NCBI GenBank assembly: GCA_002269645.1
Contig: NIVC01004433.1
Coordinates: 1-46,111, forward strand
Length of the DNA stretch: 46,111 bases
DNA from: Macrostomum lignano
Lineage: Eukaryota
Direction: 5' to 3'
Shown here: piece by piece, positions 10,307 through 32,246 of the stretch
Position numbering within the stretch: the first letter of the stretch is position 1
How the letters are laid out: each line of letters opens with the position of its first letter
Position numbers and translations under genes: made by a program
Notes under the pieces: model-generated
Told to the model about the DNA's origin: nothing
Databases searched by the model: none
The model's input: only the letters and a program-made list of their open reading frames with translations

Positions 10307-11348
10307 TCAGATAATGAGCATTTCGAACTCCATCAGCGAGTAGTAGAATCCGTAGTAGTATTTCCATATGATGCCGTGACCAAACGGACCACCGATGGCG
10401 TCAGTGAAGTTCTTGTACACCCCGTTCGGGTGCGTGCTGTAGCAGCCTTGGAACCACCAGCCCCCGGAATAGTTCTCAGCGCAGCTGCTTGAAGAGTCGT
10501 CGTGATCGGCGTCCATCGTGCTGAACTGGCTGCCGGCAGAGTAGGACAGGCTGTCGCCGATGCCGTCGCTGCCCGAGTAGCCCAGCACCTGCAGCCGGTA
10601 GTTGTCCGACTCGGGACCCACGGAGAAGCTGGAGTACTCGGCCCAGTGCTCAGAGTCGTTCCACGCCTTCATCAGGATCCTCAGCTTCCGAGGACTAGAA
10701 GCAGTGAGAGCGTGGAGAGAGTTCAGGCCTGGGAAGATGCGGACGTCATGGCGGTGTTTGTCATTGAAGTCCGAGTTGGAAAAGAAGCGAATGGAGCAGA
10801 TCTGGGATGCACTCACCGATCCAGTAGTTTCCGTCGGGTCCCTCGCCGAACTCGCTCTGGTACTGAGTCCAGTTGCGGTAAAAGTCCACTGAGCCGGACA
10901 CCCTGTGCTGCACGGTGGTCCAGCAGTCACTGCCGGCTGTCTGCAAGGTGACACAACAGGTGTGTCAGCTTTTATGCTCTGCGTTAAAGCGTGGCTGTGA
11001 TGCTGACAAGTCTTGCGGTATGACTCACCCACACTCGCTGAGCTCCCTTGTTCGCATTGCGGCACTTCCTGCAGTGGCTCAGGCCGAGTCGCACCTGAAG
11101 AGAGCGCACAGGCCGGAGCTGGCGTTGAACGCGACCAGCTGCACAGCGGAGTCGCTGTTGGCATGCACCGCGCATTCAGAGTCGCTTCGGACAGGCAGCG
11201 ACCTCACGGCCTCGTAGTCGGAAAGGCTCTCGAGACTCGACCACCACGGTCGTCCAGAGAAGAAGGCGGCAACGGCTTCGGTCACGTGATGCGGGACTGC
11301 AGCGAGCAGCAGCAGCAGAGCCACTTGACGAGCGGGTTGGAGCTGCAT
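10307..11348 (-). pseudogene. FReD locus G2; exons 11348-11029, 10940-10817, 10728-10307; 1-bp frameshift in exon 1 near 11091 (pseudogene or sequencing error)
   Basis: Signal peptide [25 protein letters not shown]. Exon 1 is 320 nt, one short of in-frame: AGG TGC GAC TCG GCC TGA against paralog AGG TGT CGC CTG GGC CTG AGC. Exons 2-3 are open and encode the full FBG part ending YSLMEFEMLII*. Confidence 0.85.
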
Positions 11349-11517
11349 TTGATCTGAATATGGAATAGTGGGTGAAAGCCGTCGCCTCAGTGCGGGTTTC
11401 ACCTGCTGGTTTTCAACCTCATTATCGAAGAAAGAAGGCAGATGGGAGACAGCGAATGAAGAGGGGAAGGAGAAGGCGGAGGCACATCTCATGGCCAGGA
11501 GTGCTTAACAGACTCAC

Positions 11518-11534
11518 CAGTTAAGCTGACTCCT
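11518..11534 (-). other. Putative 17-nt 5'-UTR micro-exon of G2
   Basis: ttacag|AGGAGTCAGCTTAACTG|gtgagt, conserved at 15798-15814 in G4. An acceptor TATTCAG sits just upstream of the ATG. Confidence 0.5.
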
Positions 11535-11638
11535 CTGTAATGTCTCCTAATTCGGAAAATTCAGTCCGCAGTCACACAGGAGGCAGGAGCTGCAAGCCTA
11601 TTATGTAAGTCCCGAGTCAGAAATTTGCAACAGCTGTG

Positions 11639-30352: not shown

Positions 30353-30672
30353 TTAGTTAGTTAGTTAGTAAGTTAGTTAGTTAGTTAGTTGGTTAGTTAG
30401 TTAGTAAGTTAGTTAGTTAGTTAGTTAGTTAGTTAGTTAGTTAGTTAGTTAGTTAGTTAGTTAGTTAGTAAGTTAGTTAGTTAGTTAGTTGGTTAGTTAG
30501 TTAGTTAGTTAGTTAGTAAGTTAGTTAGTTAGTTAGTTAGTTAGTAAGTTAGTTAGTTAGTTAGTTGGTTAGTTAGTTAGTAAGTTAGTTAGTTAGTTAG
30601 TTAGTTAGTTAGTTAGTTAGTTAGTTAGTTAGTTAGTTAGTTAGTTAGTTAGTTAGTTAGTTAGTTAGTTAG
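30353..30672. repeat. (TTAG)n microsatellite, about 80 units with AAG/TGG variants
   Basis: Direct reading. Confidence 0.97.
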
Positions 30673-31244
30673 ATGAAGGCAGTTAATTAGGGATACTAAC
30701 CTTAGTGCTTAGTTTGTCAGTCAGTTCTGTAATGCCTTCTAATGTCGAGAGCGTTTTCAACTCAAGCATCTAATTCTCCGCATGTTTCAGAGGTATGCTG
30801 CTGCATTCGTGTGATAAGCATTATTGGGAGAGTTGCGAAAACAGGTCATATCAAAATTAATTAAGAATTGCCTGACTTTGGGGGCAGAAATACAACAGCA
30901 AGAGAAGTGCCTGTCCTCATTTAGAGTGATAAACATGGATAGTTATAAAAAACAAAGGAAAAACACTATACGAAGGGAAGATGAAGGCAGTTAATTGGCG
31001 ACAAGTATAAACTAAACTGAAAACTACAGACCAGTAAAACACAAATAACATTCGACAGTTTACTACGAACTACTTATACGTGTATCGGAGATCTTATGAA
31101 TTGAGAAGGAAAAGTATTCAAAATAGTGATAAAACTGCCGAAGTTATTCAGTTCTTTGTTGGCTTTTTCATTGGCAATGAAAGCTTCGACAGAATGCCTC
31201 GATAACCTTCAAACGAATATTTATGTCCCATTTGCCACAAAAAA

Positions 31245-32246
31245 TCACAGTACCATCATCTCGAACTCCTTCAGCGAGTAGTGAACATCATAAAAATGAA
31301 TCCACATGATGCCCTGAGCGTACGGACCTCCGATGGCCTCAGAGAAGTTCTTGTACTGTCCGTTCGGATGGGCGAGAAAGCAGGCGGCGAACCACCATGC
31401 TCCAGAATATTCCTGGGCGCAGCTGTAACCGGAAATGTCGTTGTCAGCGTCCTTGGTGCTGAACTGCATGCCGTTGCCGTCCGAGAAGCTGTCGCCCACT
31501 TTGGCACTGCCGGTCGAGAAGCCGGACACGTTCAGCCGGTACTTGCCGGACTCAGGACCGACTGAGAAGCTGGAGTACTCAGCCCAGGTTTCCAAATTGT
31601 CCCAATCAGTGATCAAAAACCTCACTTTTCGGCTTTTAGACCTCGTAAGCTCGTGAAGCGAGTTCAGACCTGTAAATCGGGCACAGCTCGTAGCAGACTC
31701 AACCGAAAAGGAAGCGAATGAGGCAGATCTTGGATTCACCACTCACCAATCCAGTAGTTTCCGTCGGGTCCCTCGCCGAACTCGCTCTGGTACTGAGTCC
31801 AGTTACGGTAAAAGTCCACTGAGCCGGACACCCTGTGCTGCACGGTGGTCCAGCAGTCACTGCCGGCTGTCTGCAAGGTGACACAGGTTTGTCAGCTTTT
31901 CTACTCTGTGTTAAAGTGTGGTAGTAATGCTGACGTGTCTAACAAAGTGACTCACCCACACTCGCTGAGCTCCCTTGTTCGCATTGCGGCACTTCCTGCA
32001 GTGGCTCAGGCCCAGGCGACACCTGAAGTGAGCGCACAGGCCGGAGCTGGCGTTGAACGTCACCAGCTGCACAGCGGAGTCGCTGCTGGCAGCAGCTGAG
32101 CACTCGATTTCAGACTCAGTTGAGACCGACCTCACGGCCTCGTAGTCGGAGAGGCTCTCGCGACTAAAAAACCACCTGCGCTCAGTGTAAGCTGCAGCAC
32201 AGTCGGTAACGACGAGCGCGGCCAGCAGCATAATTACCTGGTGCAT
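31245..32246 (-). CDS. FReD locus G6: secreted PAN/apple-like + fibrinogen C-terminal domain protein, 279 aa, intact; exons 32246-31956, 31870-31747, 31669-31245
   Basis: Signal [19 protein letters not shown]. 291+124+425 = 840 nt open CDS with the same intron phases as G1/G4. FBG motifs [36 protein letters not shown]. Confidence 0.92.

Follow-up and report, generated by a model that had tools for sequence, protein, structure and literature searches.

Fibrinogen-related genes of the flatworm Macrostomum lignano share a recombined, near-invariant core and differ in the predicted ligand-binding subdomain

The stretch of DNA analysed here (the window) is the 46,111-nt contig NIVC01004433.1 of the flatworm Macrostomum lignano (assembly GCA_002269645.1; positions 1 to 46,111 of the forward strand). 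It carries six loci, G1 to G6, with coding sequence for a fibrinogen-related domain (FReD). In G2 and G4, DNA that is almost identical across the centre of the gene gives way abruptly, within exon 3, to divergent DNA coding for the P subdomain, the part of the protein that is predicted to bind ligand. We consider it likely that these genes belong to a lineage-specific FReD family, arrayed in tandem and in inverted orientation, that evolves by partial concerted evolution together with birth-and-death, and that would supply the animal with a germline repertoire of lectin-like proteins. All six loci follow a three-exon plan with GT-AG introns of 77-215 nt. An earlier reading of the letters alone (hereafter the sequence-only reading) had proposed six such loci within positions 10307-32246. 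All of them exist, but G1 lies outside that span, and only G1, G4 and G6 are intact, G2 being frameshifted and G3 and G5 being truncated pseudogenes.

Positions 1627..2839, minus strand: G1, intact; exons 2839-2546, 2330-2207 and 2045-1627; 278 aa; Pfam Fibrinogen_C match of 128 bits.
Positions 10307..11348, minus strand: G2; exons 11348-11029, 10940-10817 and 10728-10307; frameshift and stop codon in exon 1.
Positions 12137..12912 (about), plus strand: G3, a 5'-truncated pseudogene, head-to-head with G2.
Positions 14580..15629, minus strand: G4, intact; exons 15629-15303, 15214-15091 and 15001-14580; 290 aa; Fibrinogen_C match of 167 bits.
Positions 16667..17150 (about), plus strand: G5, a heavily deleted pseudogene, head-to-head with G4.
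Positions 31245..32246, minus strand: G6, intact; exons 32246-31956, 31870-31747 and 31669-31245; 279 aa.
Positions 10499..12733, no strand assigned: the G2/G3 head-to-head unit, colinear with the G4/G5 unit at 14772-17149 (78-94% identity in self-BLAST).

The copies differ widely in their state. The damage in G2 lies at about 11089-11091 in exon 1, where a 1-bp deletion and two adjacent substitutions give FRCDSA followed by a stop, in place of the FRC(H/R)LGLSHC of other copies. Since this site is no homopolymer, the deletion is probably real, and G2 is probably a recent pseudogene, or else an assembly error. The peptide encoded by its P subdomain is identical to the C-terminal tail of the UniProt M. 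lignano model P0001. G3 has a 17-bp deletion in its remnant of exon 1, an intact exon 2 and intron 2, and a degraded 3' end of exon 3 with a stop at 12850. Internal deletions have shortened exon 1 of G5. This copy is missing the 3' part of exon 2, all of intron 2 and the 5' part of exon 3, and it stops inside the P-subdomain coding region (exon 3b). The head-to-head units G2/G3 and G4/G5 read as an older segmental duplication or a long conversion, with both ends inside P-subdomain coding regions. G6 shares sequence with G2-G5 only between the 3' part of exon 1 and the end of exon 2, and its protein is essentially identical to UniProt model P0019. G1 mismatches G2-G6 at 40-46% of nucleotides in exon 2 and exon 3b, and belongs to a divergent subfamily outside the homogenised set. 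When the G4 product was used in a protein search, the top 35 matches were all M. lignano entries named "Fibrinogen C-terminal domain-containing protein"; none of the deposited proteins matched it exactly, the best reaching 93%.

The segments on which the comparison of the copies turns are the following.

Positions 10600..10965, minus strand: near-identical tract of G2, running from the final 25 nt of intron 1 through exon 2 and intron 2 to the codons for DNY in exon 3 (this first part of exon 3 is hereafter exon 3a).
Positions 14873..15238, minus strand: near-identical tract of G4, common to G2 and G3.
Positions 15084..15432, minus strand: G6-type segment of G4 (3' part of exon 1, intron 1 and exon 2), with its counterpart in G6 at about 31740-32085.
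Positions 14580..14872, minus strand: exon 3b of G4, the P-subdomain module, with equivalents at 10307-10599 (G2), 31245-31540 (G6) and about 12646-12850 (G3).

Between the tracts of G2 and G4 there are only one substitution and one single-base indel in 366 bp, with no mismatch in the 124 nt of exon 2, 1 in the 88 nt of intron 2 and none in the 129 nt of exon 3a. Past DNY, 98 of 293 positions differ (33%). G3 follows G4 with six differences over about 405 nt (G4 15227-14823), its tract ending ~50 nt beyond DNY. Upstream, the affinities of G4 change. Its intron 1 mismatches that of G6 at 5 of 85 positions and that of G2 at 15 of 88, and the 30-mer GTGGTAGTAATGCTGACGTGTCTAACAAAG is found at just two places, G4 15265-15294 and G6 31918-31947, both in intron 1, for a chance expectation of 0. 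The G6-type segment of G4 as a whole differs from G6 at about 12-14 of about 350 nt, and the part of it at 15432-15239 differs from G2 at 24. G4 is a mosaic of G2-type and G6-type segments. The sequence-only reading had described most of this from the letters alone: the near-identity of G2 and G4 over about 365 bp, the close likeness of G3 in the tract, the collapse of identity after DNY, the peptide strings that it quoted for the P subdomains, all of which are correct, and a mosaic G4 with a G6-type intron 1 all hold. The collapse reaches further than it had stated, into the 3' flanks. Its further statement that intron 1 of G2 matches that of G5 is weak, as the two differ at 11 of 88 positions, against 15 of 88 for G2 and G4.

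These patterns point to exchange between the copies. At the polymorphic sites of the trio G2, G4 and G6, G2 and G4 agree in the upstream region and the 5' part of exon 1; G4 and G6 agree in the 3' part of exon 1 and intron 1 (a run of 12 sites, permutation p<=1e-4); and G2 and G4 agree again across exon 2, intron 2 and exon 3a (a run of 70 sites, permutation p<=1e-4). In exon 3b the trio is star-like, with 29, 36 and 38 sites for the three groupings and 24 at which all three copies differ. The best-supported grouping thus switches three times along the gene, a clear phylogenetic incongruence. Silent differences between G2 and G4 likewise fall into three strata that differ significantly (Fisher p 6e-22 to 3e-4): 1 of 143 silent sites in the core (0.7%) against 35 of 60 synonymous sites in exon 3b (Fisher p=6e-22), and about 16% in the upstream region and intron 1, with a synonymous divergence (dS) of 0.27 in exon 1. 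Moreover, the endpoints of the tracts are unlike between the pairs G2/G4, G3/G4 and G4/G6. Because silent and intronic sites are identical in tracts, the topology switches and the endpoints vary, ectopic recombination between paralogues, whether gene conversion and/or unequal crossing-over, is well supported. This agrees with the patchwork homogenisation proposed from the sequence alone, a single consistent topology being absent. Purifying selection as the cause of the identical block was ruled out, since intron 2 and synonymous sites are identical as well, and a single duplication is excluded because it leaves the silent strata and the topology switches unexplained.

Exon 3b has a different history. 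Every pair of copies diverges there at 31-33% of nucleotides, with a nonsynonymous divergence (dN) of about 0.31-0.33 and a dS of 0.77-1.12 by the NG86 method (dN/dS 0.30-0.43); the LWL85 method gives similar values, and over both methods dN/dS is 0.30-0.47. Maximum-likelihood estimates of dS are saturated in two of three pairs (25.5 and 6.0) and serve only to confirm that dS is large. When the 400 nt past the stop codons were compared by blastn, no pair of 3' flanks gave a match. Because dS is high and the 3' flanks are unalignable, the P region is old DNA that escaped homogenisation and not a coding patch that accelerated recently; the diverged block takes in non-coding sequence as well. These data bear directly on one alternative, in which whole genes were duplicated recently, the shared tract is simply the ancestral state, and the P loops then accelerated under positive selection or a local mutator. 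The abrupt junction at DNY would suit it, as would the fact that close pairs differ almost only at variable sites. However, the framework codons of exon 3b have a dS of 0.5-0.77, the 3' flanks are without homology, G2 and G4 show about 16% divergence upstream and in intron 1 against 0.3% in the core, and the topology turns to G4 with G6 in intron 1. Recent duplication is therefore largely refuted, and we regard it as the least probable of the explanations considered here.

The same division of the gene is seen across the family. We aligned 26 units taken from UniProt models together with the window copies G1-G4 and G6, and computed per-site entropy on a core set of 22 units. Residues 110-208 (G4 numbering) average 0.13-0.34 bits of entropy and none exceeds 1.5 bits, so that a block of ~100 aa is almost invariant in about 20 paralogues and is adjoined by loop-like variable patches. 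In at least 18 of the 22 paralogues the block ends at the same IGD motif, immediately before the first of these patches. Over residues 209-290, 24 sites exceed 1.5 bits; they form patches at G4 residues 210-217, 228-231, 235-238, 244-249, 265-268 and 273-279, and among them stand 19 framework residues that do not vary (QF, D..D, C, WWF, C, NG, Y, G..W, Y and EM). With the beginning of the protein included, the layout of the gene reads as variable, invariant, variable. The two variable ends appear to be loosely coupled. Distances among segments of the P module co-vary (Mantel r 0.48-0.69), while the correlation of the N-terminal region with P is weak (r 0.23-0.30), and models P0003 and P0005 have identical P modules and differ at 6 of 41 exon-1 positions; the modules therefore appear to have been re-assorted across the core. 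In a metagenome assembly in the ENA, an unrelated contig, ctg9504 (L001, 9.4 kb), contains two FReD open reading frames (ORFs); the alignment of one with G4 covers 58% of the query at 47% identity.

The UniProt models also bear on whether the identical tracts could be an artefact, that is, paralogues or homeologues collapsed or cross-polished during assembly of a neopolyploid genome. The hidden polyploidy of the species and its difficult assemblies (PMC10733133; PMC10468722) lend this some weight, as does the best deposited match of G4, at 93%. Yet more than 20 distinct UniProt models pair the same invariant block with different P modules, and they reproduce the P modules of G2 and G6 exactly. 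These models apparently come from another assembly, because G4 has no exact match among them. In addition, the tracts are imperfectly identical and have unlike endpoints, and the mosaic includes an intron-1 segment in common with a gene 16 kb away. An assembly artefact is accordingly very improbable, hardly more credible than recent duplication.

The proteins carry a recognisable FReD, represented by its B and P subdomains. The Pfam profile Fibrinogen_C (PF00147) matches G4, G6 and G1 with 166.8, 152.1 and 128.1 bits against a cutoff of 22, from profile position 38-40 of 221 onward, the canonical A-subdomain sequence being undetected. The best sequence match in the Protein Data Bank is ficolin-2 (E 4e-43). 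With the AlphaFold model of P0004, which is 82% identical to G4 (pLDDT 70), the top Foldseek matches are L-, H- and M-ficolin and FIBCD1, with TM scores of 0.73-0.75 and E 1e-17. Some of these alignments reach about 245 columns at a root-mean-square deviation of about 6 Å, which hints at a very divergent A subdomain. Each protein has a probable signal peptide, recognised from its N-terminal hydrophobic stretch; its poly-Leu core is encoded by a (CTG)n run (G4 15570-15596, G2 11300-11320) in which G4 has two more CTG, hence two more Leu codons. Exon 1 of G1, G2, G4 and G6 (e.g., G4 15303-15548) encodes a Cys-rich domain of ~80 aa with the pattern ESLSDYEAV...C...C..FRC...HCRKC, which has no Pfam match at E<=10 and which AlphaFold folds as beta-alpha-beta-beta (pLDDT 60-85). 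This domain may be an A subdomain that has diverged very far, or else a novel module. Collagen-like Gly-X-Y repeats are absent from the translations, Pfam finds Fibrinogen_C only, and no Ig-family domain is matched by Pfam.

In contrast to this conserved chassis, the canonical pocket is not kept. The motif FSTKDADHD and the C233/C246 pair are invariant in the 22 units, G1 deviating with RDGPSGD, and a Ca2+ site is predicted from the motif D-x-D-x-D. We mapped the pocket by alignment to ficolin-2 and by the residue equivalences published for FIBCD1, tachylectin-5A (TL5A) and the ficolins, whose S1-site residues include K381/R186, E398, Y405, N413, H415, Y431, A432 and W/Y443 (PMC3908420). Positions 213, 230, 237, 245, 247, 266, 267 and 278 of G4 correspond to FIBCD1 K381, E398, Y405, N413, H415, Y431, A432 and W443, respectively, and all eight vary across the family (entropy 1.1-3.3 bits). 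The equivalents of Tyr405, His415, Tyr431, Ala432 and Trp/Tyr443 (1.1-2.4 bits) differ between G1, G2, G4 and G6; in that order, the residues at 237, 247, 266, 267 and 278 are N, H, F, A and Y in G4, Y, Y, F, G and F in G2, and Y, F, Y, A and V in G6. A conserved chassis with a variable pocket would fit diversified ligand specificity but also relaxed constraint.

What selection has done at these sites was assessed with a set of variable codons defined from the UniProt paralogues only, independently of the window copies: an entropy of at least 1.5 bits gave 24 codons. Their proportions of nonsynonymous (pN) and synonymous (pS) differences are 0.47-0.66 and 0.48-0.94, a ratio of 0.6-1.4 in which both terms are saturated, and which cannot separate positive selection from relaxed constraint. 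The 72 framework codons of exon 3b have a dN/dS of 0.16-0.29. The sequence-only reading had expected dN/dS above 1, or strongly elevated, in the P loops, which is not seen in the P module as a whole and, given saturation, is not demonstrable at the 24 codons. Its description of a hypervariable ligand-binding subdomain in a candidate diversifying system is only partly supported: every S1 equivalent varies, but the divergence of P is old and not accelerated; nor is variation confined to P, for the N-terminal half of exon 1 varies too and the core is flanked on both sides. In the closest pair, formed by G4 and a unit of P0001 that resembles it, 11 of the 24 variable sites differ, against 2 of the 72 framework sites and 1 of 85 core sites (Fisher p=1.6e-6), and 4 of 82 exon-1 sites differ. 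This excess is suggestive only, and would imply either faster-than-neutral change or short conversions. The P0001 unit is G4-like in the last two variable patches and has P0005-type residues at 5 of the 12 differing positions in the first three patches, a pattern that may reflect a short conversion inside the P module. A test for micro-conversion within exon 3b, based on the clustering of shared patterns, was borderline (p=0.056) and supports no claim.

The strongest competitor is that concerted evolution here is wholly neutral. The core would be prone to recombination, the P module, the 3' flank and the 5' end would lie outside the usual tract and be too diverged to join it, the variable sites would reflect relaxed constraint, and the family would lack a diversified recognition role. 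This would account for the dN/dS of the P module, for pN being about equal to pS at the variable codons, for the variability of the N-terminal half of exon 1, for the fact that half of the copies are pseudogenes, and for tract endpoints that vary without a single fixed boundary. It accounts less well for variable sites that interleave with the 19 invariant residues and coincide with all the S1 equivalents while DADHD and both Cys are kept, for an invariant block that stops at one and the same motif in most paralogues, or for the concentration of changes at variable rather than framework sites in the closest pair. We judge it unlikely, though a good deal less so than an artefact or a recent duplication.

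We favour the view that partial homogenisation of these genes has left a lectin-like repertoire. Ectopic recombination between paralogues has repeatedly overwritten the centre of the gene, which begins in the 3' part of exon 1 and takes in the first third of exon 3; the events differ in age and endpoints, and every gene has become a mosaic. Homogenisation never reaches the 3' flank or the final ~290 bp of exon 3, which keep their old divergence. Within exon 3b, the framework codons are under purifying selection (dN/dS about 0.2) and about 24 codons, including all positions equivalent to the S1 lining, change freely. Genes die alongside conversion, as the truncated G3 and G5 and the frameshifted G2 show. 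The product would be a germline-encoded repertoire of lectin-like, Ca2+-dependent proteins that combine a single chassis with many different pockets and whose N-terminal and P modules are re-assorted across the core. The P module might have been spared either as conversions that erase a pocket are selected against or as its high divergence blocks the extension of heteroduplex, two possibilities that our data do not separate. By analogy with known FReD proteins, a role in the recognition of microbes or glycans would be the most likely function, and the immune role envisaged in the sequence-only reading likewise follows by analogy.

Several points weigh against this account. A dN/dS above 1 is not demonstrable in the P module or at the 24 variable codons, owing to saturation, and positive selection on the P module is neither demonstrated nor excluded. 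Codon-level comparisons use the DNA of three to five window sequences; the other members enter as proteins only, and these are partly fused or fragmentary gene-model products, apparently of another assembly. Half of the six copies (G2, G3 and G5) are dead or damaged, and neutral decay could account for part of the divergence seen in G2 and G3. The N-terminal half of the exon-1 product also varies (mean 0.85 bits; 17 sites above 1.5 bits), and the sparing of the P module may merely reflect its distance from a recombination-prone core. Finally, assemblies of the neopolyploid M. lignano are difficult (PMC10733133; PMC10468722), and polyploidy blurs the distinction between paralogues, homeologues and alleles.

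A more ambitious interpretation would make the invariant core a dedicated recombination platform that re-assorts N-terminal and pocket modules, while short conversions, for which adjacent copies and among them the inverted pseudogenes G3 and G5 serve as donors, alter the pocket loops and create new specificities. It is hinted at by the mix of G4-like and P0005-type patches in P0001. Such a process would act in the germline and possibly in somatic cells, as proposed for snail FREP3 or for the conversion of chicken Ig genes by pseudogenes. We hold this interpretation to be doubtful, less probable than neutral concerted evolution if still ahead of an artefact.

Compared with known systems, the M. 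lignano proteins share with TL5A, FIBCD1 and M-ficolin the same fold (Foldseek TM 0.74), the 13-residue spacing of the Cys-Cys loop and the region of the Ca2+ motif. Like TL5A, they are short, consist of a FReD and a Cys-containing N-terminal segment, and lack a long stalk. However, TL5A, FIBCD1 and M-ficolin keep the residues of the acetyl pocket (PMC3908420), whereas the M. lignano copies differ from one another there. Ficolins give the best matches in sequence and structure, but the M. lignano proteins have no collagen-like domain and are hence not ficolins. The FREPs of Biomphalaria glabrata are FReD proteins whose diversity has been attributed to gene conversion and point mutation (PMC12074976). 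Those proteins have one or two N-terminal immunoglobulin superfamily (IgSF) domains and are reported to diversify somatically, whereas the M. lignano proteins have no IgSF domain and the evidence on them bears on germline paralogues alone. The FBN/FREP genes of Anopheles and the FREPs of oyster, mussel and amphioxus resemble the M. lignano family in their lineage-specific tandem expansion, in variation of the ligand-binding part and in birth-and-death with pseudogenes. What sets the M. lignano family apart from other expanded invertebrate FReD families is that ~100 aa are literally identical in about 20 paralogues through recombination. In MHC, KIR/Ly49 and plant NLR clusters, as in this family, conversion homogenises a framework but leaves the recognition segments distinct, so that genes are mosaics whose parts give conflicting trees. 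Those clusters have documented positive selection, the M. lignano family does not, and fold and organism differ. Our literature searches found no such FReD family described for Macrostomum or planarians, and nothing specific on concerted evolution of FREPs.

The DNA around the loci is rich in repeats. The last 12.4 kb of the window (33671-46111) consist of a 23-bp satellite, GCGTCATGTAAACAATCATAGAA, in about 547 copies with 90-92% matches, a GC content of 35% and a strong AT skew of 0.33. Tandem arrays occur at 1-441 (46-bp x10), 9536-10166 (29-bp x22, immediately 3' of G2), 21811-22046 (34-bp x7) and 22404-23416 (33-bp x31, open in several frames). Between G5 and G6, at about 25700-29200 on the minus strand, reverse-transcriptase- and endonuclease-like ORFs mark what appears, from the ORF translations alone, to be a non-LTR (long terminal repeat) retrotransposon; (TTAG)80 at 30353-30672 and a second short copy at 28160-28248, 2 kb away, flank the retroelement region. 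WSC-domain-like ORFs lie at 18589-18897 (minus strand) and 22045-22350 (plus strand). UniProt model P0018, named "WSC domain-containing protein", fuses FReD fragments with different P modules to the same WSC gene, which suggests a paralogous or homeologous locus with the same neighbour and other pocket modules.

For the annotation of this genome, the loci carry a warning: they yield fused or fragmentary models (P0001, P0002 and P0018), and in a neopolyploid, orthology and copy-number calls are confounded. Innate recognition in flatworms is poorly known, and Macrostomum lignano is a tractable species with transgenesis and RNAi. A germline repertoire of recognition proteins is a known kind of system; what would be new, as far as our literature searches found, is a case in the Platyhelminthes. 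If our interpretation is correct, M. lignano would possess some 20 or more secreted FReD proteins, built on a common chassis and distinguished by their canonical sugar-binding pockets. Such a family would lend itself to studies of how lectin specificity diversifies, and of how interlocus recombination and selection divide a gene into parts that are homogenised and parts that are protected.

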